Part shown: positions 6,815 through 64,000 of the stretch, piece after piece
How positions within the stretch are numbered: position 1 is the first letter of the stretch
Layout of the letters: the number at the start of each line of letters is the position of its first letter
Source of the DNA: Pavona decussata
Lineage: Eukaryota
NCBI GenBank assembly: GCA_977016875.1
Contig: CDRNST010000221.1
Location: 124,001-188,000, forward strand
Length of the DNA stretch: 64,000 nt
Direction: 5' to 3'
Notes under the pieces: generated by a model
Databases searched by the model: none
What the model was told of the DNA's origin: nothing
The model's input: the letters and a program-made list of their open reading frames with translations, nothing else
Made by a program: the position numbers and the translations under genes

Positions 6815-7099
6815 TTATAGCCTTGAGAGTTTGTCACTGACCCTATCCAGGATTCTCTTGGCAAGATCCAGGACCTCGTGAGCCGTCGTTTCTGAGTAGA
6901 CTTCATTGGGAATCTGGGGGTAGCGGACTTGGTCAGGATAGCGCATGCGTGTTGAGTCCACCACGCGACACTCCAACTTGTTTGCTAAGCTGTCCAATTG
7001 TAAGTCGTCCAAACGTGCGGCAATTCGTATTAGACTGTGTGCATGTGTCTTGAAAGCATCATCTGCATATTGGGCAGCCTTCAGCGCCTTCTCGGCAGC
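6815..7099 (-). CDS. SACS: Sacsin-like gene 1, last exon (C-terminal part of HEPN domain)
   Basis: Acceptor ttag|GCT at 7099; reads AAEKALKAAQY...THAHSL...RMRYPDQV...IPNEVYS...LSRL*; 285 nt, phase 0, continues from WACFKCHQ. Confidence 0.92.
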   Translation of the reverse strand, partial: AAEKALKAAQYADDAFKTHAHSLIRIAARLDDLQLDSLANKLECRVVDSTRMRYPDQVRYPQIPNEVYSETTAHEVLDLAKRILDRVSDKLSRL

Positions 7100-7304
7100 C
7101 TAAATACCATAAAAGTGCCATAGCAACAATGGTTTCATACAGCCCTTTCCCCCACACATCAAATGTTCCAAAACTGTACAAATGGTCTACAAATCTGCGC
7201 ACTAAGACCTTAACTCATTTAAAAACGAAGTGGTTTTATCGTTACCTGTCCCATTTTCAAAGTTGTTGCTATAAATTTTACGTTTTATTACATTGCTTTC
7301 AGGT

Positions 7305-7306
<2 letters not shown>

Positions 7307-7346
<40 letters not shown>

Positions 7347-7436
7347 CACTACCACTACCACTACCACTACCACTACCACTACCACTACCACTACCACTAC
7401 CACTACCACTACCACTACCACTACCACTACCACTAC
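7307..7436. repeat. (CTA)n then (CTACCA)n microsatellite running into an N gap
   Basis: Direct inspection. Confidence 0.95.
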
Positions 7437-7925
7437 NNNNNNNNNNNNNNNNNNNNNNNNNNNNNNNNNNNNNNNNNNNNNNNNNNNNNNNNNNNNNNNN
7501 NNNNNNNNNNNNNNNNNNNNNNNNNNNNNNNNNNNNNNNNNNNNNNNNNNNNNNNNNNNNNNNNNNNNNNNNNNNNNNNNNNNNNNNNNNNNNNNNNNNN
7601 NNNNNNNNNNNNNNNNNNNNNNNNNNNNNNNNNNNNNNNNNNNNNNNNNNNNNNNNNNNNNNNNNNNNNCAAAGTCTAGAGAGATTCGCTATTCCCACAC
7701 GTAGTTTGGGCCACCTTTAACGCCCCAGTCTATGTATAATCTTATAGCATACNNNNNNNNNNNNNNNNNNNNNNNNNNNNNNNNNNNNNNNNNNNNNNNN
7801 NNNNNNNNNNNNNNNNNNNNNNNNNNNNNNNNNNNNNNNNNNNNNNNNNNNNNNNNNNNNNNNNNNNNNNNNNNNNNNNNNNNNNNNNNNNNNNNNNNNN
7901 NNNNNNNNNNNNNNNNNGGTAAAGC

Positions 7926-8048
7926 ATTTGACAATAAAAATCTGCGACGCTTCGACGTTTCCAGAACGTCATTATTAAGTGCAAGTTCTGGAAACGTCGA
8001 AACGGCGTGCTGTGTTTTACAATATTTTATCGCAGATTTTTATTGTCA

Positions 8049-8051
<3 letters not shown>
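7926..8051. repeat. Inverted-repeat hairpin, possible Penelope-like pLTR remnant with degenerate hammerhead-like motif
   Basis: atttgacaataaaaatctgcga / tcgcagatttttattgtcaaat and ttcgacgtttccagaac / gttctggaaacgtcgaa; GACGTT-loop-AACGTC stem followed by GAA. Confidence 0.45.

Positions 8052-8119
<68 letters not shown>
8050..8119. repeat. (TAA)n microsatellite
   Basis: Direct inspection. Confidence 0.95.
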
Positions 8120-8121
<2 letters not shown>

Positions 8122-8719
8122 TTTATAGATTTAACCAGGGTGACCTCTTCAACATAAAATACTGATATCAATAAGGGCCCTGCAAAAAAAAGGAAAGAAC
8201 CTAAAAAGCCTAAATACAGCCACTAACGTTAAAAGTAATTAAAAAGCTAATGATCTATAGAATTCTAATTCTTAAGATCCTTCATTTCAGTTTGGAATTT
8301 CATTAAAAAGTTTTGATCCACTTAAATAAAAAGACTTCTCTGCAGTCTCAATTCCCACTTTGGGAAGCATTAAGTTCTTCCAACTTCCCCTCGTCTTGTG
8401 AGGTAAGTTCTGTGTAATTACGAATTTTGTTGTACCACATAACAACTAGAGAGCTAACCCACTCATCAATTCAATTCGGCACAAAATCCAGTCATTGCAG
8501 TGATCATGATTATCCTCATCGTCAATCAAGAAAATTTTTCCGATACCTGATCACTCCTATGCTTCTGCCTATTCCTATTATTCAAGGTCAGTGGTCCACT
8601 TTTTTTGTCTGTGGATGATATATTCTTATGGGTGGTCGGTCAGATGAAATATATTTTTTAATCTTCAACTCTTATTCAGGACTTTTGGAAGGGGAAAGTT
8701 AAACTTTCAGGGCACCTAC

Positions 8720-11700
8720 CTGATGGCACTTGAAACAAGCCCACTCATACGATGGGTTGTCAGCAGCTAAGTCTTTGGAAGCCGCCTTCAGGTCGAGTTT
8801 AGCTTGTCTGAACCAGCGGCGTGCCTCACCTGGTTGGGGATTCTTCTTACAGAAGCTTGGAGGAAAAAATGATTTCGAGCCAGCACTGGTTGAATCAACA
8901 CAGTCCCCAAATGTTCGCATATAACTTGCCCTGTATTCTCGACGTTGTGCATGATGTTGCCGGGCACGCGTTTCCCAGAAACCAAAGAAGGCTTTGAGAC
9001 TGGTTGCTGAATTGCTGTCCGAGCTATGGCTTCTAGCTTGTGCTTCACTGCGCTCCAACCTTGCAACTTCATTCTGTAGGTGCTGGAAAACCTCTTTGTA
9101 GAATTCCTCGTCTTGGAGGTTCTTCTCAGGATGCCACTGTAGAAATAATCGCTTTATGATTTTTCTCCTTCTTTTCTCAGGGAGCGACCATGCCATTTCC
9201 AGCGCCTCTGTAACTTGGGCCAAAATTTTCATTTTCTCTTCTGTTAGAGTGGAACTTGTATGTTGGTCTCGTAACCCAAGTGAAGAAGACTGGAGGCGAT
9301 GAAATTTGTACAAATCAGCCGATTCGGCATCCTGTAGCGGTTTGTCATGGCCTACGTTGACTTTGTAGAGTTTTGTATAGAGACTGGCGTCTTCTTTATT
9401 TGTGTCTTCAATGATAACGGCATAGACAAAAGTAGCATCTCCGCTCTCCTGATCCAGACTGGGATCATCCAATTCCAAACCAACATATTCTCCAGGGGAA
9501 AATTCTTCAAATGCTTCGTTTAAGAGATGATGGTCTTCGATCGGGATGAAATTTCCTGGCTGTGGCAAGACATTATTCCGTGACGCGTCGTAAGAGTCAT
9601 CTTGTCGAATTTGCATGTCGTCCAGGATTGACCATATCTTGGTGGGATCCGTACGCAGCATCTCTGGAATGAACATTGCCGTCTCCCGAAGCAACCCTTT
9701 ACATGCTTCTGCAATCACTTGCGTTAAAACCAGTGATACCTTGCTAAGGGTGTCCTCTACATCTGCATTAACATAGACCTTCCAAACAACTTTATCAGCT
9801 TCTGAGACCTTATCCACGAAGTGTGGCACTTCAGCTTCACTGCCTGGAATAAGAACTCCCTTGTACATCAGGTTGGTCTCAATTTTCTTCATTCCAAGGA
9901 ACTCGATATTCTTAAGCCTGTCTTCGACGGAAGCAATGACATTATCATCCAAGTTTCCACTTTCACGGTTTGCATGCCGAATGAGCCTCAAGATTCCATG
10001 AAAGAACTGTTCTGAGCAAAGTTGTTTTTTCAGTGAATCAGCCACGTTAAACCGTACAGCCAAAGCAACACCATCCGTGGAATCCGGCGAATGAACAAAT
10101 TTCTCCTCCACAACATCAGATAGCATCTGCGGTCGAAAATCTGTTGAAAGAAGCATGATGTAATCTTTGTAGTTCATGCATGAGTTGCGCTGCAGTTCTG
10201 CTCTCTTTAGTTCCACCACAAATAGTTCGTTGAAGCTCTGTAGGCGACTTTGGTACTGAGGAGCGTCATCGAATATTAGGTCAGTGGACTTGTGTAAGGT
10301 AACAGGTTGAGTCACACTTGCGCCCCTACTAAATACACATAGTGCTGGCAAGTAAAGTTTTGAGATACCAATCTCCTCCGCCGAGTCTTGTTGCAGACAC
10401 TCAAAGAAACCTCTAACCGCTCGCAAGGAACTTTGGATCTCGTTGGGGTGTAGCTTATTTTCCTTACTTTGATCGTGTAACATTTCCAGTACCATCGCGT
10501 AGTGGGACGACTTTACAGATTTCGAGCTACCCAAATACTGAAACAACTTGTGAAACTCTCCAAATTCTGGAGGGACTCCAAATAGAAATGGTGATATCTC
10601 GTCCCTCTCGTACAGCTCAAGCACAACTTGTTGAGCTGGAACGTACCTTGTGCCCTGCTCGACCAAAATGCAAGGTGCATTTTGAAGGCTTCCCTTGACA
10701 TCACTGTCTGTGGTACCGTTTTCCTGCAAAAATCTATAAATCTTTTTCATGACTAACTTTCTTGTGACACTCTGATCTTCTGACACTCTGGTATTGTTTT
10801 GCTTCACGAGATGATGAGAGATTTTGAGGCAGTGAGATGTAACCAGATCTGTGGTAGGTTGTGACAGAACGCTAAGACGTGACAGGGGGGAGCCGAAAGG
10901 AACCCTCATTGCAAACGAAGCTCTTGGATCTGCCCACTGGGGGAGTAGATGCGCTGTTGTCCAAACAGTCTCAGCATGCTCTAAAATGACAGAGTCTTTG
11001 AAAGAAATGTATGGAGTTTGGCCCTCTTCTTTTTCACCATACTGTGCGTGTAGCTTGCGAAGGTCATCGCGGACTGGATCTGAAACCACAAAGCGAATTC
11101 CGCAAACAGCCTGCAGAAGACCATCGTCTAACACGTGTAGTCGACTGAAAAGGTGGGAAACTAGAACCTTGGACTTATTGTCTGTTTCCGCAGTCCACTG
11201 CCTGTCCGCTTCCTCCGCTACCTCATCGACAAATCTCTTGAAATGATCGCAAGAAACTTCGTGCACCATCCCAATCTTCTTCATAAACGGTAGCCATTGT
11301 TCCGAGTTGAAAGGTTCAGGTGGAAACTTGTCTTCCGAAAGCATGGCTTTGAAAACATTGTTGAGAGGGTCATAGAAACAACTTGCTTTCTGCAATGTAC
11401 CATCACCTGTGGTAATGACCTCCGTGTTCCTCAAACAGTGTACCATCCTCTCTTCGTCAGTCGTCGGAGTGCTTCTCAAAATACAGTCTCGAATATACGT
11501 GAGGTGCGTCTGTTTTGTCTCCCTGCTGAAGACCTTGAAATGTGGACAGATGAATTTACAGTACACATCAATTGGAGAGATACTGTCAAATTCTAGAAAT
11601 TTGTATAGTCCAGAGAGGCCTTGGACGACTTCCAGAAACAACACATTAACTTCACGTTCTAGACTGCTTATTTCCACTCTCGGTATTCCACTAGGTAGGA

Positions 11701-14700
11701 GGCAAATTCGTTGATTTTCAAGACTGACAAGACTACCGTGTGTGGCAAGATAAAAGGGAAGCTTCCTCAAGGTATCTTTCCCACAGGAGATTAATTCCAA
11801 GCTGCTTACATTTTCGCTAAAATACTGCAGAACGGTCCTGCAGCTGTTAGGATCCAATACTCCTTGTAACGAATAAGCTCTTGTTTTCATACGTCGTTGA
11901 AGTGATAGAAGAAGAGATCCTGGGTTTGCAAGAGACCCGACAACGCATTTAAGGACAGCCTGTGCATCCCTTAATGCACTCATCATGTGTGCAGTTGAGG
12001 TTAATGGGCTACAAAGAACTGATGTGTTCAGCTCAGGCAGACCCACCTTTTGAAGAGCTTCAACAAGTGGCATTCTTGTAATATCCCATTGTGTGAAGTC
12101 AAGAACTGATTCAGCTAAATCCAAGGGAACCAGGAAATGGACTGTGTCTTGACTTGAATCACTTAAGCCACTCCCTTCTTGCACTTCATTTTTCTCTTTT
12201 GCCGGGAGAATACTCCAATTGGACAAAGGTGCGAGACTAATCCTCCGAATGTAGCTTGACTCTTGATTCCCTAGATGGAATGACATAAGAGGTTTCGCGA
12301 CTTCAGCAAGAAAACTCCAAACTCTGAAGATCCAATGAGGAGTTGGTTCTTGAGCAGTCCCGTCATCTGGGAACCACTTGACGAAGTCACCTTTCTGGTA
12401 ATACAACGGTGGCAGTGTACGGGGCAAATATGTGGCGAAAGCATTAACATCAAACGGTTTGAACACAGATGCCTGACGACTTACTGCATCGTTGAAGATA
12501 TTAGTTCTTAGTTGCTCATGAACAAACATCTCCTTACATTTTGGCAAAATGTCGTGGTATCCAGACAAGAACTTTCGATCTACACGATCAAATGCACGAA
12601 GTACATTGTCTTGTGTGAGAAGTAGCGGCAGACCAGGTAAATTCTTTACAAACTCTTTCTGACGTTTGCAGTAGCTAAGCACAAGTGCAACGCCAGCATC
12701 GCTCTTAAATGGAGTGTCGTGGACATTAGCCGGAATAGATCCAATGCTACAAAGAGAATCTTTACTTCTGAAGGTCTTCAAAAATTCCATTACCGATGAA
12801 GGTGATACGCAACAGGAATACACATCACACTGATGCAATGCGCGGAAGACAGATAACGAAAACTTTACAAGGTTAAATCCCGTTTCAATCAGGATTTCTG
12901 ACAAGGAAATCTTTAAATCTGTCTCAAGATTATTAAAGAACGCCTGGTCTTTTCCTAAGCCAGTTGGTGGAAGCCATGACAAGTTAGCTTTATTCGAACA
13001 AGCTGAACCTCTGGGTGCTCTTCGCAACACTGGAAGAAGACGCATTTGCTTTTCGTTCATTCCCTGATACACAGATCGTACTAGCGTATTCCAATAAGAA
13101 TCGGTCGCAAGAACTTGTGGAAACAGCTTCTCATAATCTTCAACTCTTATGACCAATTCTTGTTCGCAGCAGCTTGGATGTTCTGGTTCAGAGCCTTGCA
13201 ACACTGGCAGCTGATAGTAATTCCTTACCTCGTCCAAAAGTCTTAGATAGCAAGATGCTATCACATCACTCAGCAAAGCGTTGTTCCAGTCAGTACGATA
13301 ACCTCCAGTTTCGTCCTTCCACAAATTTCGCCTGGCCTCGTGGTCCAATGCAAAGTGACCATTAATGTGAACTGGCAGATCAGTTGTAATTGGAAGCGGT
13401 AAAAAACAATAAGCTTTCTTTTTTCTTTCTGGTGGCTCCCCTCCCTTTGATGTCTTTGTCAAGAGGCAAGCAACACCACCACTGGGAAGCATTCTAAGAT
13501 CGTGACTTCGAAAAGCATTGATAATACTCTTTGTGATGCTGTTCTCAAAACCAAACTGCTGAACGACGAACCAATTCTCTTCATTCCCGGTATTGTCATT
13601 CAACGTCATAACGTAGGAGCAATGCTTTCGCTCAATGTTAGAAGGGAGATGCTCTCCTTCTTTGACCAGTTTTCCAACTTTCTTTGTGTAGCTGGCGAAT
13701 TCGCGTCGTTTAAGTTCATCTTGGTCAGACATCACTGCTTTGACTGAATAGGAGTTTACCACTTTTCCAGTCTCATCAATTTCGCACAATGTTATCTTCT
13801 TCACGTTGTTCACAAAAAGAAGGACTTCAAAGAGCTCACTCTTTAGTGCTTCCATCATTTCACTCACTATCTCCAGCGTAATTGGAGTTTGTGATAACTT
13901 GGAAGCATCGGCCATCTCTTTCGTTCTAAGAGGAAACCGAAACATAGTTGAATTCTGTATTGGAAAATTGTCCTCTAGGTAGCAGGAAAATACATCTGGA
14001 AATGTTTGCTTTAACTCTGTGGTCTCTATGTACTTTCTGCCTGGTTCTTGCGGATTAGCGTCTGGGACGTACTGACAATTTGGATCAAATACGCACAACA
14101 CTTCGCCAATCTCATCACTTTGGGACATGAACGAAGGGACGTCGGTCAAGTGGTAGACAGCATTAAAGCCAACACCATACTGGCCAGTCTTGCTTGGGTC
14201 ATTTTCTTTACTTCCCTCCCCAAGGTGCTGTATGCCTTCAATATCGGCCTCAGTGAAAGGTTTGTTGTTGTAAACGCACAACGCAGGGCCCTGTAGTGGC
14301 TCCCAGCAGGTCTCAAATACTCGCTCCTTAGGATGGTTGCGGGGGTCCTTAATGAAACAAATCTCAGTTGCCTGTGCGTCATCTGCATTCTGAAGAAGTT
14401 CTTTTAGTAGCTCTTTCCCACATGGATAGGCCTTCAGAATCCGTTTTAAGCGATTTGTTAGTTTCTCCTTCTGTCCAAAAGATATTCCAAATGTGTGACG
14501 CCGCAAAGCTTCTTCTCTTCGTGACTTTACTCCTAATGTTGTAGCTGTTGATCGAGGAATCTTGGAATTGACAAACTGAACTCCAGTATTCCCGGAAATC
14601 CAATCACAATCTTTAAAACAAAGTTCCTTCACCGGCTGCATTATTCCTTTAGAGCTTGGAAGATAAATCAAATCCCTCTTCTTCTCAGTTGTTATAGAAA

Positions 14701-17700
14701 ATTTAGATTCCAGCAACGAATCTTCTAATTGCGTTGCCAAATTTACGGCAATTTGAAGAGTTTGCTTGTCCAGTTTTCTTCCTTGAAATTCTTGCATTAT
14801 ACGCTCCAAAGCAAACATGTAGTCGTCTGGTCCGAAGAAGTCTCTCACACCGGCTACTTTCATCAGTGTTGAATACAGCCGAGCCAAATCCTCAGGAATC
14901 TTGTATAAATACGGAGAACAATCAGCGTGTAATTTGAACGCTACTTGATTCCCACACAAAAACTCATCTCCAACGAGAATACAATTCTTCGTTTTCAGAA
15001 AACCAATTATTTCAGCCTCGTTGTCCCCGAGCTCTTCTTGAAGAAATCTGTAAGACGAACTGCATACTGTTCTAACCATTTCCGCATCAGCATGGGCTAG
15101 TCCTGTAGACACTGCCTCATTAAGTTGGGCAATCACATGCTTGACTGTAGCCTTATTTCTGTTTAAATTCAAGAACTCTGCAACTTTCACCGGGATGGAC
15201 AAATTGATTATCGGTTCAGTGCAACAAACTAGATACAACTGATCGGTTAAAAAGCCCTCAACTGAAGATATCAGAACTTGCTGGTTTTCCCCTTGAATTT
15301 CGCTGCCTTTCCAGGTGAGAGGAAAGTTCTGTGGCTTTCCGAGTACCGGGAGAAATTTAGCTTCTGAAATCCTGGTTCGAATCTCAATTGATGGAAGACT
15401 TTGACCTTCACGCTTCAACTTTTTTTCTAAAAAGTCTATCAAATGCTTAGTCCTCTGAATGGCTTCATCGCTCTGATCTCGACTCAGAATGCTTACGCTT
15501 TCTGCCCTTTCTGCCACCTCGGGCCACGAGAGATCATTTGTCAACATTCCAAGTTGCTCGAGCTTTAGTAGTCGTGAAGGATTAAGGAAGGTTTCGTCAG
15601 TGCCATGTGGAAACCTGGCATCTTTGATAGAAAACAGCAGCCCTACTTCTTTTTCTGGAGAGACAAGCTGAGTGGGGCATTTTAGGCTGTAGCCTTGTGG
15701 TGATGCTGGAATGCATGCGTAGCTCTTAATCATGTCATCAAACTCTCCATTTTTGTTGTCCAGTGCGTACAGGACCAATCTGTCTCTCAACTGAGGAGGT
15801 ACCGAGCCGACGTTTGGAAAGAACAATTCGCGAAAAAACCTGTTCTTATTAAAGTTTCCAGATTGGATCGCTGTTTCCAGATCAAAGCTAACAAACGACT
15901 CGTGAATGTCCGCAGGAAGATCAACAACAACCTTATTGCTACCTAGCAGTAACCGAAAAACCTCAAACGCTACATCCCCGATTTCAGTATCCCTGCGAAA
16001 CATTGGATGGAGAAAGACAACCTCGTGGACTCCCACCCAACTGTTTCCATGTGGAAAAAGGGGGAGGCTCTCAGCAACAAGGCGTTCATAAAATGAACAG
16101 GCCAGAGGCTCACAGGCTTTTTCTACTTCACGGGACCTAGGCCACAATGAATGAAACTGATATGTGCCTCCTGGTGCTTGTGTAGCTTGCTTGACATCGT
16201 TAATGAGATCGAGATATGCAGCGCAAACAGAATCTTTCAATAGAACGTTGTTCCAATCTGCTCCGATGCAGACTTTGTCGTCTTCAGTTTTGTCCTTCAA
16301 CCTACGTCTGTTAGAAGCTACTGCAAACGCTCCATTGACGTGTAAAGGGAGACCAGTGTGAATTGGAAGGGGAAGGTAGCAAAATGCACTTCCTGAGGGA
16401 TTTGAGCGACAAACAGGTACTGAAATGGAATCATAATTAAGCGTCAGTTGAACAGCAACTCCACCTGAGGGAAGAAGGCTTTTGTCTTGCTTCGAAAACT
16501 GCATTGCTTCGCCAGTTCCCATGGAAGATGCGACAAGCCACCTCTCTGTATCGGATGGTAGGTGAACTTCGTCTCCGAAGAAATGGGAGCCGTCCACTGT
16601 AACAGTGCTTTGGACGTCGATGGTAATCGCTGACCTCAGTAAAACAGTACTTGAATTCCCGGAATATCCCGCAAACTTGACAGCTTCGGATGAGGCTCTA
16701 AGAAAGTTGCACTGCTTTAAAAGGAACTGATCCTCAGCGCTGAGTTCTTTAGAGACTGTAGATAGGTTGTATGGGGTAGACAACTCTCTTAGCACTACAT
16801 CTTTTGCCAACTTTTTTGTCACATCAAAAATCATGTTAGGTTGTGGATTTCCAGTTGTGTCTTTAGGCAAATGAAAGATGCTTACTCGAAGGACATTCTG
16901 TGTGAAGAGAAGCAGTGATCTGGCCCCACCAATAAACAGCCTCAATAGGTCTTTTACTTGCTTGCAGTCGTAAGGAAGAGGATTGATTTCACTTCGTATG
17001 GCTTGCTCTTTGGTTCTTAGTGGGAAGCGAAACAGTGTCCCATGAAAAGAGTTGTCTTCTTTGTCTAAATGAAGGTCACAATCAAATATACCATTGAACG
17101 GTTTGAACTGATTGCGGAACTTTCGCAGCTTCTTTACATTTTTGTTGGTGTCAATTTTCACTCCCGGTTTGTTTTTGTTCCTGATTGCCTTTCCAAGATA
17201 GAAGGTGTTAGGATCAAAAATCACGAAATAATTTCGGCTAACCAACATGGGAACATCCGTGAGGTTATAAACTGCATTGAAGCCAAGGCCAAACTTGCCA
17301 ATTTTTTCAGTGTCGTGCTCTTTTGTTGCTCCGCTCAATTTTGTCAAGTTCTCAAAATCTTCATTTCGGAATTCCGCATCGTTGTATACCCACAGTGCAG
17401 CACCTTGACATTCTCTCATTCCTTCGTCAATCAGGCAGGTCATGGCATCCTCGTTGGTGCGTTCATCGTACAGAAATCTGACTTCCGTGGCACCTGCGTC
17501 GTCGGCATTCTGAATAAGCTCTTTTGGTACTGCAAATCCATCCTTGTAGTCTTCAAGGAGTCTGTTAAGTCTACGAGTGAGTTTCTCCTCTTGTCCAAAC
17601 TCTTCACCTACTCCTAACTCATCTGGATCTAGCATTGAGTTACTCAAGGGTCGAACGTTAAAAAATTCTGCTGTGCTGTTAGAAACGTCCGGATGGACAA

Positions 17701-21253: not shown

Positions 21254-21256
21254 TAC

Positions 21257-32412: not shown

Positions 32413-32416
32413 TCAA

Positions 32417-50563: not shown

Positions 50564-51088
50564 GTGCGTTTATAAAACTCCTCTTGATATATTTTCCACT
50601 GTTTACTCATTTTGTCTTCCTTATTTAATGCTGAAGAAATGCCATGTGCTTAATAGAGCGATGTTGGACCTTGGAACAATTATGTGCAAACAAATCCAAA
50701 TTAATAGACCAAATGAAAAAATGGCAATTTGATTGGTTCAGAGAGCAAAGCAAATGCCTGTGGTTTTTTGGTGGGCTTCGATCTTTCACCCCTGCGTTTG
50801 TTTCAACCGTGGCGGGTGAAAAAAAAAGCCGGAAGAGGCGTCTGCTTTCGCAGGCTGTTCAGTAATATACTGTAGCAAACCAACCTGAAGCGTTATTCAT
50901 ATAATTATTGTCCAGACACAGTAATTACTGGATTTCAATCCTCTTTGAAGGTGCAATGCTCTTTAGTGGCGCTAGGACTGACTCGTACAGTAAAATAAAT
51001 CATTTGCCTGCTTTTGATTCAAAGCGTTCGTGTGTTATTAAAAGTCAAAGCAAACCCCATGATACATGATATATATCTTGCTTCATAG

Positions 51089-51417
51089 ATGTTCAGTTGA
51101 CAAGACGCTAAGGTTCCATCCCCGCCCAGACCCGCAGACTCAGCGTTTTAGCCTGGAAGCCTTCCAATATGTCAGCAAACACCCTCAAGTCTTCTTCCAC
51201 TGCAAGGTTAAAGTTTGCAACGTAACTGATCCAGCCTCGTGGTGTGAACAAGGCTGCATTAAACGAGAGCGACGAAGTACTAAGACTCTCCCTGACAACA
51301 TAGATGACGTGTATTCTCTGGCCCAGGGTCCGCTCACACTGAACCGAGAAAAGTGGGGGACGGACGCAGACGATCAAGACCTCGATTTCCATAAGGGCAC
51401 TCGAGTGTTAGAAAACA
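51089..51417 (+). CDS. ZP-C exon b with furin-like cleavage site
   Basis: CSVDKTL..QRFSLEAFQY..VFFHCKVKVC..SWCEQGC.KRERR..LAQGPL. Confidence 0.85.
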
Positions 51418-54400
51418 GTATGTATTGTTGGGTCAAGGAGGAGAGGAGAGTGAAAATATAAATAATCTAAACCAGGAGCCCATTGCCCAGAGCGTACAAC
51501 TGTTATATGTTCGTGTGATGGCGTTTTCACCTTAGATTGAAGTCCCCACAAATCCGGTCTCCCAAGGGAACCATTCTAGCTTTGCACAATTTTCATGTGA
51601 ACCGGAATTTAAATTTTCGCGGGAAATAGTACTCCCATACGTATCTAAACCTAAACCGACATGTGTAAACGCCGTTGCGAAGGCCAAGAATGGCAGTTAT
51701 TCGCTCTGAGTAATGGGCTTCGGCCTAAACGAATTTACTTACAGCAAAATTAATTTAAGTGTTATTCGTTAAAGTATCAAAGTACAACTACCTTGGATAA
51801 TAGGCTAATGGTTATCATAGCGTAAGAGCTATTTTGGCAAGGTGCTTCAGCAAAGTGAACCCTTTTCAAGACCAGACACTTTCCTTACCTTCCCCTCTTA
51901 AAGGAAAAGTACTAGAGTATCTCAGCTTCTACAGACGAGTGGCTTTTCTGGATAATGAGATAAACCGGACAGAAACAGCTATTTCAAATTCCAAAAAGAA
52001 TCTCAGCTAATGCGAGCCTCGTTGGCTATCTATAATTTATTATAACCCACCCATCAATTTTCGCACGATTTTATTTTATTTTAAAGGGAACTGGGTGCTG
52101 AGAGACTCCTGGAACACATTGGCACACATGCACACGGCATACACGAAGGGAAATTCCGGAGACTCAGTAGTCGCTTAGGGTCTTTTACTAGAGCCCTTTT
52201 GAATTGGTTCATAACGGTTTTTAAATTTTGTTTTGTATCTTTTGCATTTCAGACAGGGACTAGATGCACGAATAGTACAAACGATGGGGAAATCACAGTT
52301 TGAAGGGAAAGGTCTTCGCGACGTTTCCCGAGAGAACCCGATTTCCCTTTCGTACATGATTTTTATATTAGAATTAGAAAAATACAATTTACCGACCAGA
52401 AGGAAACATTTGGAACAAATAGAAGGTGAAAGTTGAAGTTGAAAGAAATTAATTGCTAGGGTACTTTCTTTATGATTTCCACTAATATTTTTATTCTAGG
52501 TTTATCTTTCCATTTTCCTTGATTTATCTTGAAAGCTCCCTCAATCACAAAAAGGCAGTTCTCCTCTAGCCTTCCGCCCACCCCACTCCATGCTCTTTAA
52601 ACGGGAGTTGGACTAGATTTCGTTTCTCTCGATGCTAACAGCCTTGTTTGTGTTTGTTGTCGTTGTTGATGATGTTGTTAAGGGGTTCCTTTAATACCCA
52701 TATATAATACTTGCTTGAACTGCCCTTGCACGCTGTCGTTTAGTGCCGAGTGTCCCGTTTAAACGCCCCCATCTGAAATGATCATACCTTATTGCCATTC
52801 TAACCTTCGCCAGAAATAAAGGATGTTTTAAAGGGCTTTTATTTCACCCATTTTGAAATAACTGGTGATCCTTGTTATAGGATTGGCTCTCAGTTAGCTG
52901 TGCGATTTATTCACGAATTGTTCTGTTGTTGTTGTTATTTTTTCGTCTAAATCACATTCTTTTCTTCAGCCCATCAAAATGAAAATGAAATAATGATAAC
53001 CAATCACATTTCATGCATTATAATACCTCCACTAGGCAAACAGTTTGCAGAAACATTTAGAACAAAAAGAGTCATTTGGGGGTGGGGGGATTTGGCAATT
53101 TCTGTTGACCAAATTCCCCCTCAGTTTTCCAGAGAAAGCCGGGTTTCTTGAAGTGGATAAATAAATAGTAATGCTGACAAAAATAAACTGTATGATTTCA
53201 AAATGGGTGAAATAAAGTGATAATTGAACGTGTCGTGCAATTTTGGTCAGCGTGCTCGTTCGATTTTGAAATCACGTGTATGTTTCAGCCCAAATCGCAC
53301 TCCACTCAGTTCAATTACCATTATTTATTGTTATTGTTATTTCGTCTCAAAGATTTACTGAAAGGTTTCTAGTAAATTCTCGAATGGGTGAGCAATCTCT
53401 ACAGCTTGATGATTTCTTTTCTAAAGGGCAACGGTGACACGCACTTGAAATGATGGCCTTGGCGTTTCAGATTGCAAATCAATCCCTCATCAATACCTCC
53501 CGTATTTAAAATTTATCACACTTATAAACCGGTGGCTCCCTTAAAAATTTAAACAATTTTATTTATCAGCAATATCAAAAAACAGTTTTACACTCATAAA
53601 TCGGTGGCTGTCATAATAGAAAAGCTAAGGCAGAAATGAAATACTTGTTGCTACAGATAACTGAAATGAATCTAATGCTAATGGAGATATTGTAGAAAAA
53701 TATATAAACTACTGAAATTGAACGCAAGGCTTCAATACATAATTGAGCTGAGTGAATTAAGACTTAGTGGCTCTTTATTCCGGCAACGTTCTATCTAACG
53801 GCTAACTGACCTTCTAGGCTAGACTTCATGTTCACTTCATTCAATTTTGAACCCTGTTTGGCTAAGAAACGCTTGAACTATTAACGATGAGTAAAAAATA
53901 CGCGAGACTTTTGTAAACAAACAAGCTATCCTACTTCATATAAAATAAGTTTACTGGTCGACTTCTTTTCTCGCTGTGAATTCATTTGATATCTTATTTT
54001 AAAAGTAATTAAAGAAAGGCGCTTTTAAAGAACGTCACCAAGTGGCAAAGTTCTTTACCTACAATACAAACAACGGGAAATTTAATAAAACTATCTTTGC
54101 AATTGCATGTAACTAGCTAAAGCTGTTACGTTTGCAAGACTTAATCCCACTTTGTGGGGTGAGTGTAACTAACTGCCAGGGTATACACATGAATTGTATT
54201 ATCGTTTTAGTGTTGGTCCTTGTCGCTTGACAGGATACAGCTTTGTGGAAAAAGCTCTTTCGCCAAAATCGATCTTATCAAAAACGGCCATAGGGCTACG
54301 GGTCTAGCCGGTTGAGCTTACCCTGATTAAGGCCGCCAATCATTAGATGGTCCTATGTGGTGTACGCCCTAAGCAACTAAATCGCGAGACAACATGACAA

Positions 54401-55464: not shown

Positions 55465-55743
55465 TCAGAAAATTCGGCTTCTAACTCCTTGGACAATCCT
55501 CTTGGCTAGTGTCAAGGCATCTTGGGCCATCTGGACATTGTACACTTCGTTTGGAATCCGGGGGGCGCTCACCATGTCTGGATACCGCATGCGTGTGTAA
55601 CCACCCACAACTCCCTCCAACTGGCTGGCAAACTGAAGTAGTTCAGGTTCATTGAAACTGTAGCAAATTTGAACCAAGTTGTGGACGTTCGATTTTTCTG
55701 CATCTATGGTGTACTGGACAGCTTTTAGGGCCTTCTCTGCTGC
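55465..55743 (-). CDS. SACS: Sacsin-like gene 2, last exon (HEPN)
   Basis: ccatag|GCA GCA GAG AAG; AAEKALKAVQY..HNLVQI..RMRYPD..IPNEVY..RSRIF*; 279 nt. Confidence 0.92.
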   Translation of the reverse strand, partial: AAEKALKAVQYTIDAEKSNVHNLVQICYSFNEPELLQFASQLEGVVGGYTRMRYPDMVSAPRIPNEVYNVQMAQDALTLAKRIVQGVRSRIF

Positions 55744-56351: not shown

Positions 56352-59300
56352 CTGGTGGCACTTGAAACAAGCCCATTCGTAGGACGGTCTAATGCACGTA
56401 ATGTCGTTTTCTACTGCAACGATATCGGCCTCTGCCTGTCGGAACCATCGCCTGGCTTCTCCTGGTTGTGGATTCGGTCTTCGGGTGGTACGTTCACGAA
56501 ACGGCTGCCTTGTTCTGTATCCTTCGCGCTGGGTGTGATGTTGCCTTGCACGTCTCCCCCAACAAGTGAAAAAATCATCGTACGAACCATGCTGAGTTCC
56601 AGTGGCACCCATGTTCGTAGCTTGTTGGCTACCTCTAGGTTCACCTCTTTCCAATCGATACATTTCACTCTGTAGATGTTTGCAAACCTCATTGCAGAAT
56701 TCCTCATCACCCACATTCTTATCAGGATGCCACCGCAGATACAGGCGCTTGATGACTTTCCGACGTTTGTCTTCTGGCATTTTCCATGCCTCTTCCAAAA
56801 GATCTGAAATCTCGTCAAACACCTCCTTTTTATTTCTACTTCTGGGTCGCTGGACGGGGTCTTGGGCAGAGCTCTGTCGCTGAACATCAGAGACGACAAC
56901 CGCTGAAGACGAAGGGGATTCTAAACGGTGGAACTTGTACAAGTCCGTGGCATCAACGTCTTTCTCTTGGTTACCTCCAATGTCAATTGTGTACCTCCTC
57001 GCAAAAAGAGGACGATCTTGAGCCGTCACCTCCTTGACAATCCTTGCGTAGATGTACGTTGCGACTCCGTCTTCTTGATGTAGGCTCGGATCTTCGAGTT
57101 CATATCCCACGTATTCACCTGGTTCAAATTCTTCAAATGCATCATTCAACAAATGATGCTCATCCAGTGGAATAAAAGTGCCTAGATTGGGAAAGATGTC
57201 CACCTCTGCTTCACAGTTGGAGTCATCTGGTCGAACTTTCAGGGAGTCTAATAGGGACCGTACACCGCTCGGGGGACAGTTCAAAATCTGAAAGATTAAC
57301 CCTGCTTTCTTTCCAAGAAGGTCTCCATATAACTCTACAATCACGTGAGAGACCCAGGATATGACTAAAGACTTATCAGCCATTGCTGCTACAGCATCTA
57401 GATACAACTTCCGCATTTCTCCACCAGATGTCGTTCTCTTTTCCAAGAAGTAAGGAACTTTGGCTTCACTTTCCGGAATGGGATTGCCGTCATAAAAAAG
57501 AATGGTTTTAAGGTTACTGACAGCGCAGATCTCAATACCTTGAAGTCCATTTTTGATTTGTCTTATCACCGCTTCATCAAGATACTTGTTGTGAGAGTTC
57601 TCGTCTCGAATCAGTCTGACTAATCCAGAAAAGAACTGTGGCGAGGACAGCCGTTGCTTCATCAGGGTCACATCTTCAGATGCCATCAATACGTTACTCT
57701 GCGAGTCACTGAGTTTTTCATCAACCACGGAAGATAGCATTTTAGGTCGTATTGTTGTCGGCAGCTTCATCAATAACTCCCTGTAGTTAGTCATGGTGGA
57801 ATGGCATGTCACATTCATCTTTCTAAGGTCAAGCAATAAATGGTGCTGAAACTTTTGCAGACGATCAAGAACATCGGGGGATTGGTCATTGAAAATCAAC
57901 TTTGAAGACTCGTGCATGGTCACTGGCAAGTGTGGTGGCACACTAAGGCTACCATATCTATCTAAGAAACTTCTTTGCGATGGGATTCCTGGTAGGTGTA
58001 GTTCCAAAAGGCTCTTAACCTCTTCCACCTTATTCTCCAGCTGTTCAAAGAAACCTTTCTCCGCCTTGACACAGATAATGACTTCATTTGGGTGTAGTTT
58101 AGCACTTTTGCATTTTTCGTACAACTTCTTTAGCACCATGGTGTAATGGCTAATCGTTACATGTTTATTACAGCCAATTCTCTGAAACAAAGGATGAAAC
58201 TTTCCAAATTCTAGCGGAACTCTGTAGAGAAATGGCTTAATTTCAAGGTAGTCATACAGGTCAAGTACCGCTTGGCTTGGTAGAATGAATTTCTTTCCTT
58301 TCTCGACCAAAATGCATGGTGTATTTGATAGCAGTTCTGTGGTTTCATTGCTTGTGATAAGCTGTGATTGCAAAAACTCGTAAATGCATTCCATGACTGC
58401 TATTTTCGTGTCACACTGCCTAGGCGAAGAATTTTCCCTCTCGTTTTTGCTTCCAAGATGGAAACAGATGGTTTGACAGTGGTCAATAACGAGATCTACA
58501 GATGGCGTCTTCATAATTTGAAGCTGAGCGATGAAAGCATTACAGTATTGGTCAATTTTGGTTCCCGAAGGACAACCAAGCTCGCGCTTCCGATGGGTAG
58601 GATCCGCCCAACTTGGAAGTAAATGCGTTTTTGTCCAAACGATCTCTGCGTAATGGGAAGGAGCTGCTCTTTTGAATGCACAAAAAAAACTCTGACCATT
58701 TGTCGTCGCTTGCCATGGTTGACATAAGTCTTGGAGGTCTTTTTTAACAGGATCACTGGCTACAAAACGAATATCGCAGACAGCTTGCAGAAGTCCTTCT
58801 GCCACAACATTGGGTCGTCGTATCAGGTATTTTACCAATACCTGTGATTTCTTTCTGGTGTTGCCGGTTGGCTCTGTTGCTGCCTCACGAGCAACTTCTC
58901 TAGCAAATCTCTTGAAGTGATCCTGAGAAACCACTCCAACTAGACCAATTCTTCGCAAAACTTTTAACCATTCTATTGAGTCAAGAGGTTTGGGCGGGAA
59001 GTTGTTCGGCGAGAGCATGGTGGTGAACACCTCTACACATGGGTCATAAAACGAAGATGCGGTTTTTAGGGAGCCATCTGCTGAGGGAATGAATGGAGTG
59101 TGTCTGAAGCAGTCCAGAAGCCGTTGCATGTCGTCTTCTGATGTTGCAGGGTTTGACAGAATATCTGTACGAATGTACTCTAGATGTGACTCCCTTGCGT
59201 CTTGGCTAAAAATGTGCAAATTTGGTAAGATCCATGTACAATACACGTCTTCAGCAGTTACGCACTCAAGAGCAAAGAACTTGAAAAGCCTCGAAAGACT

Positions 59301-62300
59301 TTCCCAGGATTCCAGAAATACAACATCTAACTCACGCTCCAATACTTCAAGTTCTATTCTTGGTACCTCAATTGGCAGGACGCAAGCTCTGGGATGTTGA
59401 TCGAGTCGTATGAAGCCTCCGTGTGTTGCAGGGTAAAAAGGTAGCTTCCTTAGCTTGCTTCCGTCGGTCTCTTTAAGGCTGCTCACACTTCTGCTAAAGT
59501 ATTCCAGGAGCACTTTACAGTCTGCAGACTTCAGCTTTTCCGGTGACTGTCGGTCCATTTCAATCTTTTCATCAAGCGCTGTTAGTAGAGATGTTGGAGA
59601 CCTCAAAGATGAGACCATTAAACGAGCCAGTGAAACTCCATTAGATGATGAATACATAGTCATTCCAGAGCTCAAGGTTGACAGCATAGCATAATTAAGC
59701 TCAAGCACTCCGAGTTTTCGTAACACTTCCACGACATCAAAATTTGAAGCATCTGGACTACCGTAATCAAGGACGGATGATGCTTTGCACAGAGGAACAA
59801 GAAACTGTGCGGCTGGCTGGGGCACGCTGGAAGAAACAAACGGAAGCAGCGACTTCTTTTTCTGTACGATTTTCACGTTATTGGCTGGGAGAATACTCCA
59901 GTTAGCCAGGGAACCAATTTTAGCTTTAATGCGTGCGTGCCGAGAATCTTCAGCTATTTTTGGATCATCGAGAATATCCCTTGTAATCTCGCCTAGAAAA
60001 ACCCACACTCTGGATATCCATCGTTGGTTGGGCGTTGTTTTCTGATCTGGAGACCACTGAACAAAGGCGCCTTTTTCGTAGCACTCACGAGGCAATGTCT
60101 GAGGTAGGTTTTGGGTGAACCCTTCTGCATCCAGGGGCCTCAAAACGGATGATTTTAAAGTCGGTTCATCACTGAACAATTTCCGGTACACTAGCTCGTT
60201 TAAAAAAACTTGTGGGGAACCAGGTAAAATATCTTTAAATCGAGAAAAAAACTTTGGGTCTTTGCTTGAGAACAACTGAAGGCAATTATCTTGCGTTAAA
60301 AGCATAGGAAGACCTGGCAGTTGATCAAAAAAGTGCTCCATCCCTTTACAGTACAGCAGCATTAGAACAACCCCAAGGGCATCTCTGAATGGTGTTGCGT
60401 TTACGTTACAGGGAATCTGTCCAATCTTGCACAGTGGTTCTTGAGAGCTAATAGACTTGTAGAAGTCGACCACAGACATGGGAGAAACAGCACAAGTAGG
60501 AACTTGTGATCGCTGAAAAGAGACATTCAGCGCCGTGGAAAAGGCCAAAAGGTTAAAGCCACTTTCGAGTAATATCTCTTCAAACCTTGTTCTTGCTTTC
60601 GTTTGGAAATCATCTCTTTTCTCCTCAGATACCTTGACAAAAGGTTCGGTTTCTGCAAGGTTGTTAAAGAATGCTTGACTTTTTTGATGTCCTGTTGGCG
60701 GAAACCAAGTAATCTCAACCACCGACGTGTTGTCCAAGACTTGCTGCGTGACACCCAAAGGCGTTTTCCTAACAACTGGCAGCAATTTTAACCCTTTCAA
60801 GTTGATTTCCTGGTAAACAGTATCCACTAATGTCTTCCAGTAAGGCTCTGTAGGTGGTATGAGTGGAAAGAATCTTTCATATGCTCTGATTCTCTGCAAT
60901 ATCTCATTTTCCGTGCACATCACAACGCAAGGGGTGCCGTCTTGAGCGATGGGCAGGTGAAGGAAAGTCCGTACTTCATCTAGAAGTGTGAGGTAGCATG
61001 AAGCCACCACATCTCTCAGTAAAGCATTATTCCAGTCACTGCGATACCCACCCGCTTCGTCTCTCCACAAATTTCGTCTTGCCTCGTGGTCGAGTGCAAA
61101 GTGTCCATTGATGTGCACTGGCAGATCAGTTTCGAACGGGAGAGGGAGGAAGCAGTAAACTTTGTTTCCTCTTCTATCAGAATCTCGCGATTTCGTCTCC
61201 AAAAGACCGGCAACACCACCACGAGGAAGCATACCAAGCTCGTGCTTCTTAAAGGCGTTGGTGATACTGCTATTCAGTTTCTTCTCAAAACCAATTTGCT
61301 GAACTATTAGCCATTTTTCTTCGTTTCCTAAGTTATCTGCGATCTTCAAAACATAGGAAACTCTTGCTACTTGAATATCACTTGGAAGAAGATCCTTTTC
61401 TCTCTTCATCGTCTCTCCAATCTGTTTGATTTTATTGGCAAATGCTCGTCTTTTGGCTTCATCATCCTTTGACATCGTTGCCTCGACCGAATACAATTTC
61501 GTCAGTCTACCACTCTTGTCATTCACTTCACAAAGAGTGATTTTATTCACATTGTTCACAAAAAGAAGAACTTCAAACAGCTCCTTTTTCAAGTCTTCCA
61601 TCAACGTATCCAGCCTACTTAGTGTCACGGGACTAGATGATATTTGAGACACCATGGCCATCTCCCGTGTTCGTAAAGGAAATCTGAACATAGTCCCGTT
61701 ATCAGTGGAAAAATGATCCTGTAGATAGCAAGGGAAAACGTCTGGGAACATTGACTTTAGTGTTGTGATGTTTTGTAACATTATTCCAGGCTCTTGAATA
61801 GTTGCACCAGGAACGTATTTGCAGTGAGGATCAAAGGCACACAAAACATCACCAATGTCGTTTCCCTTTGACATAAAAGAAGGCACATCCGTCAAATGGT
61901 ACACAGCGTTGAAGCCGACTCCGTACTGACCAGTCTTGTTTGGATCTTCTCCCTTGCTTCCCTCACCAAGGTTATGTATTCCCTCGATATCTGCCTTGGT
62001 GAATGGCTTGTTGTTGTACACACAAAGCGCAGGACCCTGCAGTGGTTTCCAACTGTCTTCAAAAACTCTTCCATCAGGATGGTGCCTGGGATCCTTAATG
62101 AAGAAAATCTCTGTGGCCTGTGCATCATCTGCATTTTGCAGTAGCTCTTTCAATATTTCCTTCTCACAAGGATAGCCAGTTAGAATACGCTTCAAACGAT
62201 TTGTGAGCTTCTCCCGTTGTCCAAAGGGAATTCCTAGTAGATGTGGTCGCAGGGCTTCCTGTCGCCGTGTTCTCACACACAGCTGACGGCATATCGCCAA

Positions 62301-64000
62301 TGAAATTCTGTCATTGACAAACTGTACGCCTTCTTCATCAGGCATCCAGGGACAGTCCCGAATGCAAAGATCAGATACCGGTGTCATCAATCCTTTAGAG
62401 TCAGGAAGATAAACAACTCCCAAATTCTCGTGCATCCCAGAAAGATCAAAGTTAGTATCTTTCACTGCTTCGCCCAATAGTACTGCCAGGCGGGTTGCAA
62501 CTTGAAGGGTTTGCTCGTCTAGTGTATTCCCTCCAAATCTACCCTTTATTTCACGTAAGCTTGAGATATAATCGTGCGCAACAAATGTCATCTTAACTCC
62601 TGCTGCTTTCATCAAAGGACCAAACCACTCAGCAATCCACTGTGGAAGCTTGAAGAGATACGGTGAACAATCATTAGGAAGCGAAAATGCCACTTGCTGC
62701 GCAGAAAGAAACCTCTTTCCGTCAAGAATGAATCTCTTTCCCTGCAACGCCTCAAAAATTCTATCGCCAGAGTGCGAGAGACTTTGCTGTAAACATGCAT
62801 AAGTCGTTCTGAAAACTTCTTGTAGCTCTTTGTATTCTAATGAATTGAGTGAATCAACCTTCGCCGAGAATGCATTGGTCAGTTGCTGTATTACTTGCTC
62901 CAATGTGACGCCCCTTGTGTCTAGCGTTAACAGCTTTTTCACGTTTCTTGAAATAGATATTCCAACCAATGGTTCAGTGCAACAAACAAGGTACTTTTGC
63001 TCCTCTAGGTAGGCTTCTTCAGGTGCTAGTAGTGAATTGTCTTCAAATTCATCTCCTTTCCAGAAAAGTGGGAAATCAGTTGGCTTTTTGAGAACTGGAA
63101 GAAATTTAGCCTTTGTGATACGCTCATAAGAAGTAGGATCGGGAAATGATTTGAATTTTATCTTCTTCTCCATAAAACTCAGCAATGCTTTTCCTCGCCT
63201 TAACGCTGCATCACTGTCATTTAAATTGTGGATACTCTCGGCTCTTTCTGCTACCTCGGACCAGGGAAGATCATTTGAGGCCATTCCTAGCTGCTCCAGT
63301 CTAGCAAGCCTTTGAAAGCTAAGATACGATTTTGGAGTACCAAACGGAAATCTGCCGTCTTCAGGAGCGAATAGTGATGCTACTTCTCTGTAAGGGTGTA
63401 CAAGTTGCTGAGGTAGCTGAAGAGTATTTCCACTCGGTGACGTTGGAATGCAGGCGTGTAGCTTTATCAGCTGGTTTAAATCTCCACTGTTAGCATCTAA
63501 AGCGTGCAAAGTCAACACATCTCTCAAGTAAGGTGGAAGGGTCAAAAGATTCGGGAAAAAAATTTCACGGAAAAATCTTATCTTGCTATAGCCTCTAGCG
63601 TTCATTTCTTGGCTTTGACCATAGACTTGTAAAGAACGGAAAACATCGAATGGCAAATCTATCACCAACCCTCGTCCCTTGAAACACATTTGAAGAACTT
63701 TGTTCGCAGCTTCTCCAGTTTGAGACTCCTCCCGGAAATGCGGATCAAGGAAAACTATTTGCTTGACGCCAACCCATCTCTCTCCATCAGAAAAAAGAGG
63801 AAAGTCGCCACCAGCGAGCTTTGCATAAAACGAGGTCAAAAGTGGCAAGCAGTTAGGTTGTACTTCAGACTCCTTCGGCCACAGCGAATGGAACACATAT
63901 GAGCCATCATTGGGGATAATTGTTTTCATGTCCTCCAGAAGATCAAGAAAGGCTGAAACCACGGAATCTTGCAACAGCACCTTATTCCAATCCACTCCAA
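56352..64000 (-). CDS. SACS: Sacsin-like gene 2, giant exon (5' partial at window edge): end of repeat 2, repeat 3, J-domain (HPD), HEPN start
   Basis: Open frame to the window edge; FGQREKLTNRL..ELLQNADDAQA..KTGQYGVGFNAVY; YLRWHPDKN; WACFKCHQ|gtatgg donor at 56352; colinear with gene 1. Confidence 0.96.

Follow-up and report, generated by a model that had tools for sequence, protein, structure and literature searches.

Sacsin is known mainly as the product of a single-copy human ataxia gene, and its mechanism is still unclear. What several strongly diverged sacsin-like genes are doing close together in a stony coral is the question raised by a 64,000-nucleotide stretch of the Pavona decussata genome (hereafter the window), which corresponds to positions 124001 to 188000 of contig CDRNST010000221.1, here C221, in the 602-Mb assembly GCA_977016875.1. 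The window contains two very long minus-strand open reading frames, whose length excludes a chance origin, belonging to two sacsin-like genes, gene 1 and gene 2. The original prediction, made from the sequence of the window, took them for a tandem array of giant ATPase-J-HEPN genes serving as candidate innate-defense effectors. Our analysis partly supports the reading of the gene family as an immune or stress effector. The genes of the cluster to which genes 1 and 2 belong are not simple housekeeping copies, yet they are ancient and conserved. The explanation that we judge best, and hold to be somewhat on the probable side, is that they encode stony-coral sacsin-like chaperones or scaffolds, probably used under stress, rather than dedicated pathogen-recognition effectors. 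An immune role of the cluster is a plausible but unproven hypothesis.

Gene 1 is complete on the minus strand at 6815-35095, and its 13,302-nucleotide coding sequence yields 4,433 amino acids plus a stop codon, in agreement with the length and the start coordinate that had been predicted. The model was built by tblastn of annotated coral sacsin-like proteins on the window together with inspection of splice signals; it has at least nine exons, all of its introns are GT-AG, and the start codon itself is split by an intron (A at 35095, TG at 33569). The joined spliced model was checked by script for frame and length only, and the exons were searched one by one. Most of the protein comes from a giant frame of 3,733 codons from stop to stop (8702-19900) that contains no undetermined base (N). 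The giant frame of gene 2, likewise on the minus strand and free of N, extends from 56280 past 63998 and leaves the window; its full genomic length is 3,769 codons. Over 2,550 amino acids, the two frames align colinearly at 45.8% identity, which bears out the prediction of two diverged same-strand paralogs. Gene 2 has the same 3' structure as gene 1 but is free of gaps there, with a donor directly following 56352 and a separate last exon (Table 1).

In gene 1, two assembly gaps (7437-7669 and 7753-7917) fall within the last intron, not in coding sequence. We place them there because the intron is in phase 0, because the HEPN domain (PF05168) is split at the splice sites, profile positions 1-33 stopping exactly at the donor in the giant exon and positions 34-115 starting at the acceptor of the last exon in both genes, and because a Montipora protein of the same orthogroup matches the last exon perfectly over its opening 23 residues, a segment in which the last exon of gene 2 differs. 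We infer physical continuity across 7437-7917 from this gene structure, not from reads, and with the gaps inside it the stated length of the intron is provisional.

A six-frame search of the genome with PF25794, followed by retrieval of the loci, brings the total to about 11 sacsin-like loci in three subfamilies. Six of them, five intact and one a pseudogene, lie within 310 kb on C221 (genes 1 and 2 with A, B, E, and F), and two more (G and H) belong to the same subfamily on other contigs; within this cluster subfamily, pairwise identity is 46-66%. The second subfamily consists of I and J (dS, 0.14; omega, 0.31) and the third of the canonical sacsin, K. Identity between K and the I/J pair is 38%, and each of these two groups shares about 30% identity with the cluster genes. 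In the pseudogene E, roughly 1,400 codons are missing from the start of the giant exon, and a frameshift and two or more stops are present; its most similar piece is 72.5% identical to gene 2. The paralog count thus upholds the idea of an array in part: the loci are clustered, but the array is not purely tandem, as A is inverted and an unrelated plus-strand EGF-ZP gene (45802-51461, with exons encoding EGF, ZP-N, and ZP-C) separates gene 1 from gene 2. In another coral assembly, the gene 2 ortholog likewise has a ZP-domain gene immediately 3' of it, so this neighborhood is conserved. K itself is intact on the other haplotype (4,358 amino acids), whereas on this one a single indel breaks it into two frames, of 942 and 3,440 codons, with a 76-nucleotide overlap; either the allele is truly frameshifted or the assemblies share an error.

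The domain content of these proteins is that of sacsin. Pfam places two SACS domains (PF25794) in the giant exon of gene 1 (E = 3e-156) and one in exon 5 (E = 1e-23) and finds the domain in the gene 2 frame as well, and in gene 1, repeat 2 resembles the solved Hsp90-like domain (Sr1) of sacsin from human and lizard (PDB 5V44-47; E = 2e-40). The GHKL motifs are intact, as had been claimed: both genes carry the N-box (E-[LIV]-x-QNADDA) and the G-box (GKFGLGF or GQYGVGF), which are preserved in all three repeats of gene 1 (repeat 1, in the upstream exons, reads ELVQNAEDA and GRFGLGF) and in every intact paralog. Pfam detected neither UBL nor XPCB in gene 1, and because the N-box of repeat 1 begins about 39 residues after the start codon, there is no room for a UBL; both domains have been described as vertebrate additions (PMC3710099; 10.64898/2026.09.30.754977). 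The predicted J-HEPN architecture was recovered in both parts: N-terminal to HEPN lies a J domain that matches the solved sacsin J domain 1IUR (phmmer, E = 2.2e-18 over 62 residues), with a reservation about its Pfam score that is taken up below. The J-domain tripeptide varies: it is WHPD in gene 2, F, H, I, J, and K, WHPE in gene 1 and B, and WHPK in A and G. Among the closest proteins to gene 1 in other corals, HPE and HPD are found 14 times each.

The original prediction had argued from a tandem expansion, to which the age of the paralogs is relevant. Trees were built with FastTree (LG+gamma, SH-like supports) from 67 sequences over 3,628 columns and from 31 sequences over 3,461 columns, the latter rooted on amphioxus. 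The best database matches of the cluster genes are all from stony corals. Proteins from Montipora and Stylophora fall in one group with gene 1, and proteins from Porites, Montipora, Oculina, and Stylophora fall in a second with F (support 1.0 for each); a third group unites gene 2, B, H, A, and G, with their own orthologs from other assemblies (support 0.76-0.98). Since the gene 1 type and the F type each hold both robust and complex corals, the duplications that separated gene 1, gene 2, and F predate the complex/robust split, and a recent, lineage-specific expansion is contradicted. The younger pairs are limited to A/G (66% identity), gene 2/E (72.5%), and I/J (91%; outside the cluster subfamily). 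The cluster paralogs are largely in conserved orthology across stony corals. Outside the cluster subfamily, K groups with Oculina and Stylophora proteins and three anemone sacsins (support 1.0), and I and J fall with proteins from Acropora, Montipora, and Desmophyllum (support 1.0). K is 52% identical to its Nematostella counterpart and 74-81% identical to those of Stylophora and Oculina; the gene 1 and F types are only 50-56% identical to proteins of the latter two corals. In this sampling, the cluster subfamily contains stony-coral sequences only and sits on a long branch, and its age relative to stony corals is not decidable from these trees.

Rates of substitution add a second line of evidence. 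Using the Nei-Gojobori method on codon alignments, we compared this genome with ERZ26692669 at both K and gene 1. K gave a nonsynonymous divergence (dN) of 0.0145, a synonymous divergence (dS) of 0.107, and a ratio (omega) of 0.136 (95% bootstrap interval, 0.10-0.17), while gene 1 gave dN 0.0453, dS 0.138, and omega 0.329 (0.28-0.38). The omega of K against two more distant corals was 0.094, and other cluster comparisons gave 0.29 (gene 2), 0.28 (gene 1 against a third species), 0.29 (F), and 0.23 (A against G). The cluster is under purifying selection that is relaxed approximately 2.5- to 3.5-fold relative to canonical sacsin. Constraint is strongest in the ATPase heads (omega, 0.07-0.17), and pN/pS is 0.2-0.4 outside a least constrained patch that follows repeat 3 of gene 1. 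No window was significantly above an omega of 1 in gene 1 or in the other cluster pairs at a resolution of 300 codons, and positive selection is not demonstrated. The divergence to which the original prediction pointed is supported in that these genes are less constrained than canonical sacsin and show the turnover described next, but purifying selection prevails throughout.

Signs of turnover came from a second set of haplotypes. The public assembly ERZ25073805 contains contigs identical to this genome at K and F, which suggests that it is the complete set of contigs from this individual. On its second contig set, the gene 1 allele is 99.4% identical in nucleotides and carries a GAA-to-TAA change at about codon 2748 of the giant frame (ctg133337, L026:10950-10990; about 11650-11660 in the window), which truncates the protein before the J domain and HEPN. 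The F allele there is 95.6% identical (dS, 0.10; F region, 94-96%), and an extra F-like paralog, P0044, is present (ERZ25073805 ctg133337:1164452-1181680). Identity of the P0044 giant exon to F is 92-97% over the first 4.2 kb but 67-80% beyond, and this step indicates a gene-conversion tract. Together with the decayed pseudogene, the nonsense allele, the conversion tract, and the extra paralog are marks of turnover, and the cluster is undergoing slow birth-and-death with occasional gene conversion.

Two further interpretations of the haplotypes were considered and dropped. Presence/absence polymorphism of the P0044 type was not retained: it has no counterpart in this assembly, but its expected place coincides with the end of C221. 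Balancing selection at F, which deep allelic divergence might have indicated, was abandoned because the dS of F is near the baseline of this individual, K on the other haplotype having a dS of 0.07 (97.8% identity). The gene 1 region is, for its part, unusually similar between haplotypes compared with K and with F 150 kb away.

Public sequencing runs speak to whether gene 1 is expressed. Fourteen runs from five studies, whose RNA status was guessed by the search tool, contain 28-88% of the sampled words of the gene 1 giant exon. Four of the 14 were assembled onto the gap-free segment 31300-37200, and three of these four (two samples, three studies) contained spliced gene 1 exons. RNA contigs join 31509 to 33456 (runs X5 and X6) and 33569 to 35095/35098 (runs X1 and X5), and as the ends at these joins are CT..AC, or GT..AG on the minus strand, X1, X5, and X6 are RNA and gene 1 is transcribed and spliced as modeled. 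The contigs also extend 81-99 letters past the exon at 35095-35142 into sequence absent from 35145-37200, so at least one further 5' exon lies upstream of 35142. These findings suggest a basal expression of gene 1 without known challenge. In all four runs, contig depth was very high, with many loose ends, at 31891-32481 and 36816-37200; these zones look like transcribed repeats in the introns or 5' region of gene 1. What looks like a decayed insertion occupies intron 3, where fragmented short plus-strand frames at 28280-30141 match DUF1759 (E = 1e-13) and DUF5641 (E = 1.5e-20), domains typical of BEL/Pao-type long terminal repeat retroelements.

The promoters had been described as rich in gamma interferon activation sites (GAS), and over the window as a whole this did not hold. 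The pattern TTCNNNGAA is not enriched in the window (39 sites versus 31.9 ± 5.3 in shuffles); there is instead a local cluster of sites in a cassette of putative promoter status, with six GAS-like sites in two tandem 685-bp cassettes and three more near 42.1 kb. The composite element of the cassettes reads TTCCCGRAA..CAGGTG..GTCACGTGA..TTCTCGGAA, with two GAS-like palindromes flanking CAGGTG and GTCACGTGA. In the form TTCCCGRAA-N(25-40)-CACGTGA-N(5-15)-TTCTCGGAA, it has four matches in the 602-Mb genome, three 5' of gene 1 and one 5' of B, and the reversed control pattern has none genome-wide. In the four assembled runs, no RNA contig fell on the proximal cassettes (35240-36815). We had considered these cassettes as transcribed first exons, an idea rejected for this reason and because the transcript has a further exon upstream; for the same two reasons, the proximal copies are probably intronic. 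The distal copy, the sole promoter candidate, may lie near the true promoter. The promoter of gene 2 is outside the window.

This 5' region is shared with another member of the cluster. Over 8.7 kb (34931-43587), it is colinear with the 5' region of B (C221:83140-88000), and identity, 68% near the gene, climbs to 92% farther away, even though the gene 1 and B proteins are only 51% identical. The pattern suggests a recent homogenization of the control region between two old paralogs. The homology may extend past the stretch that was compared.

Table 1. Positions of the features of genes 1 and 2 and of the related loci (numbers refer to the window unless a contig is named)
Feature	Position	Strand	Description
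Gene 1 last coding exon	6815-7099	-	94 amino acids plus stop (6815-6817); C-terminal two-thirds of HEPN, RMRYPD; Pfam HEPN 34-115, E = 8e-7; match to human sacsin HEPN structure 3O10, E = 1.5e-5; AG acceptor precedes 7099
Gene 1 last intron	7100-8719	-	Phase 0; donor CAG/GTAGGT follows 8720, acceptor TTTAG/GCT precedes 7099
Gene 1 giant exon	8720-19797	-	11,078 nucleotides; sacsin repeats 2 and 3, J domain (WHPE, about 9125-9154), HEPN start (8720-8824)
Gene 1 giant-exon N-box and G-box	17495-17521, 17279-17299; 14375-14401, 14165-14185	-	
Least constrained patch of gene 1	11726-12628	-	Giant-frame codons about 2425-2725, after repeat 3; pN/pS 0.9-1.3 versus ERZ26692669 ortholog, 0.85 versus ERZ26692694 ortholog
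Gene 1 coding exon 6	21257-21840	-	From tblastn of Stylophora and Oculina sacsin-like proteins; GT-AG borders
Gene 1 coding exon 5	22826-23807	-	SACS-domain part of repeat 1; Pfam SACS, E = 1e-23
Gene 1 coding exon 4	24540-24687	-	Repeat 1 G-box GRFGLGF
Gene 1 coding exon 3	31400-31510	-	Repeat 1 N-box ELVQNAEDA; RNA contigs over 31399-31509, joined to 33456
Gene 1 coding exon 2	33457-33569	-	TG of start codon; acidic N terminus MDPELDSDDEEF..., no UBL; RNA-contig joins on both sides
Gene 1 short 5' untranslated exon	35095-35142	-	Ends in the A of the split ATG; covered at 35096/9-35144 by RNA contigs of X1 and X5
Two tandem 685-bp 5' cassettes	35582-36871		Composite elements at 36072-36128 and 36758-36814
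Distal partial cassette	41963-42155		Composite element at 42097-42153; differs at 1 of 57 bases from the copy upstream of B
Third assembly gap	43905-44092		Intergenic, between gene 1 5' region and EGF-ZP gene; touches no coding sequence
Gene 2 last coding exon	55465-55743	-	92 amino acids plus stop; rest of HEPN, RMRYPD; Pfam HEPN 34-114, E = 4e-5
Gene 2 giant exon	56352-64000	-	3'-terminal 7.6 kb; the whole frame, about 11.3 kb, reaches C221:191586; repeat 3, J domain WHPD (56721-56750), HEPN start
Gene 2 N-box and G-box	62121-62147, 61911-61931	-	
A	C221, 31.4-42.8 kb	+	Cluster subfamily
B	C221, 63.2-74.4 kb		Cluster subfamily
E	C221, 249.8-257.4 kb		Pseudogene
F	C221, 293.0-304.3 kb		Cluster subfamily
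G	Contig C143		Same subfamily as C221 genes
H	Contig C18		Same subfamily as C221 genes
I and J	C540:104337-117206 and C540:134476-147342	-	30 kb apart, 91% identical; giant exons of about 4,290 codons, unsplit HEPN
K	C87:773136-786205	-	Canonical sacsin, third group, single-copy

By homology to vertebrate sacsin, the cluster proteins would act as ATP-driven giant chaperones or scaffolds. Members that keep HPD would recruit Hsp70 through the J domain, and HEPN would dimerize or bind nucleotide or RNA. The paralogs have probably diverged in their clients or partners, the patch after repeat 3 being the least constrained part, and they would probably find their use in cellular stress responses, to heat and possibly to infection. 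Several points weigh against this interpretation. The two J domains score 15.7 and 12.7 bits in Pfam DnaJ, below the cutoff of 27.8, and Hsp70 coupling may be lost in the members in which HPD is replaced by HPE or HPK. At HEPN, the RYPxxH register survives in the K and I/J types (RYPHFH in K, RYPNKH in I), but genes 1 and 2 have lost the His at +5 (RYPDQV and RYPDMV), and human sacsin shows the same loss (RYPDLL). Judged from sequence only, genes 1 and 2 thus lack the Rx4-6H motif of catalytic HEPN RNases. A different reading of the motif, as RMRYPD (Rx4D) accompanied by a conserved His upstream, is possible, however, and an Rx4D-type variant has been discussed for HEPN-T proteins (PMC3710099); because of it, HEPN catalysis cannot be judged at this level. 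The Acropora gene under balancing selection has three exons where gene 1 has at least nine and probably belongs to a different subfamily. Finally, relaxed constraint and turnover are equally compatible with a family driven by conflict.

This last point leads to the most serious alternative, which we regard as a real though distinctly less probable one: that the cluster is a family of innate-defense (for example, antiviral) effectors or sensors, induced by pathogens perhaps via the GAS-like/E-box element, whose ATPase repeats and HEPN act on foreign nucleic acid or on the proteostasis of infected cells, like the related prokaryotic Tiamat and plant NOV proteins. The multicopy cluster with its pseudogene, nonsense allele, conversion tract, and haplotype-specific extra paralog would fit such a family, and so would an omega 2.5 to 3.5 times that of canonical sacsin with one patch near 1. 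The composite element with its two GAS-like palindromes, all four genomic copies of which lie 5' of just two cluster genes, also fits. Comparative evidence points the same way, and the statement in the original prediction that sacsins are virus or stress induced in aquatic animals proved correct: oysters have a multigene sacsin family that responds to poly(I:C) by induction (PMC7064767), and in fish, nodavirus has repeatedly been found to induce sacsin (PMC8875540). In two preprints, the sacsin ATPase is placed beside antiphage Tiamat and plant NO VEIN, and aquatic sacsin homologs are described as lacking UBL and XPCB (10.64898/2026.09.30.754977; 10.64898/2026.09.30.755639).

Against a dedicated defense role stand the ancient duplications, with orthologs kept across stony corals, and the failure of any window to exceed an omega of 1 significantly. 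The presence of gene 1 words in runs of unknown condition from five studies, with spliced exons in three of the four examined, likewise speaks against it. A Pfam search found no nuclease domain, including the PD-(D/E)xK nuclease NOV_C (the sole matches were SACS, HEPN, and a weak HATPase_c_3), and the canonical His register of HEPN is lost. At the regulatory level, GAS sites show no window-wide enrichment and the proximal cassettes are probably intronic; six-frame searches of the genome for STAT_bind and STAT_alpha came back blank, an uninformative result that does not show absence. The original prediction had itself named constitutive expression, uniform purifying selection, and one-to-one conservation across cnidarians as observations that would refute it. 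We found conserved orthology across stony corals and purifying selection that is relaxed and non-uniform, and constitutive expression is only suggested.

In its most specific form, the defense idea becomes a good deal more speculative, and we consider it doubtful. The cluster would then be a defense module from the Tiamat/sacsin ATPase lineage, in which the patch after repeat 3 contacts pathogen or damaged-self ligands, coupling to Hsp70 varies among members (HPD, HPE, HPK), haplotypes differ in gene content and null alleles, and gene 1 and B are coinduced through the shared GAS-like/E-box element.

The opposite view, that the genes are old, subfunctionalized proteostasis copies divided among tissues or stages, with redundancy accounting for the higher omega, strikes us as similarly improbable. 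It draws on the ancient, conserved orthogroups, on purifying selection throughout, on the same sequencing runs from five studies and the spliced transcripts in three of four, and on the ATPase motifs that stay intact in intact paralogs. It is less easily reconciled with the heat- or virus-responsive sacsins of corals, oysters, and fish (10.1101/867754; PMC7064767; PMC8875540; PMC6208414), with a pseudogene and a heterozygous nonsense allele that show members to be dispensable, or with the variation of the J-domain HPD. That genes 1 and 2 are haplotigs or a misassembled duplicate, as the very divergent haplotypes of this individual (dS of 0.07 even at canonical sacsin) and the gaps in the contig might suggest, is refuted and has a negligible chance of being right, given their 46% identity with saturated dS, their separate, closer orthologs in other species, the EGF-ZP gene between them, and the ZP gene beside the gene 2 ortholog elsewhere.

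Whichever of these views prevails, a stress-used chaperone family being the one we favor, the cluster provides natural variants through which the functions of the repeats, the J domain, and HEPN can be probed. It also provides loci at which to test two current ideas, a role of coral sacsins in heat tolerance and an immune origin of the sacsin/Tiamat ATPase lineage. There is a practical warning in it as well, in that expression or population signals assigned to "sacsin" may stem from any of about 11 paralogs or from very divergent haplotypes.

Compared with human SACS (the ARSACS gene), the coral genes share the three repeats with an Hsp90-like head, the sacsin-type J domain, the C-terminal HEPN without the RYPxxH His, and one giant coding exon of about 11 kb. 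They differ in having no UBL and no detected XPCB, in being multicopy and clustered where SACS is single-copy, in the HPE of gene 1 in place of HPD, and in an intron-split HEPN, and their identity to human Sr1 is moderate. Sacsin HEPN, and also Death-fused sacsin paralogs in sponges, were discussed by Anantharaman et al. (PMC3710099). Closer at hand is the canonical cnidarian sacsin, represented by K, by "sacsin isoform X1" of Nematostella, and by "Sacsin" of Stylophora, which has the same domain order and a giant exon. K is nevertheless only about 30% identical to genes 1 and 2, is single-copy, has an omega of 0.09-0.14, and carries RYPHFH (Rx4H) in an unsplit HEPN, whereas the cluster subfamily was found in stony corals only and has an omega of about 0.3.

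Among corals, Cunning et al. counted the Hsp70 co-chaperone sacsin among the stress- or immune-responsive genes that have diversified in corals (PMC6208414). Fuller et al., citing heat induction, reported for a sacsin gene of Acropora millepora the strongest genome-wide signal of long-term balancing selection (10.1101/867754), and two haplogroups of the three-exon Acropora gene have been described (PMC8626496). That gene shares with ours the Hsp90-like domain, the J domain, HEPN, and the lack of a UBL, and it too has been read as a heat-stress co-chaperone with unusual evolution. It differs in its three exons and in the lack of a paralog signal in read coverage, as against the at least nine exons of gene 1 and a six-locus cluster. 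The induced sacsins of oysters and teleosts are aquatic homologs, multicopy in oysters, and it is for them that induction has been demonstrated, not for the coral cluster genes.

With Tiamat, a bacterial antiphage GHL ATPase-nuclease, and with NO VEIN, the coral proteins share the SACS-type ATPase and helical-repeat supradomain PF25794, according to the preprints; they differ in having three repeats rather than one, in ending in a J domain and HEPN, and in having no NOV_C nuclease match. Multicopy coral sacsins and the idea of a role for them in stress or immunity were thus known already. What our analysis adds is the anatomy of the cluster, the three subfamilies and their age, a matched comparison of rates, the differences in J and HEPN motifs, the pseudogene, the nonsense allele, the gene-conversion tract, and the 5' block shared by two old paralogs.

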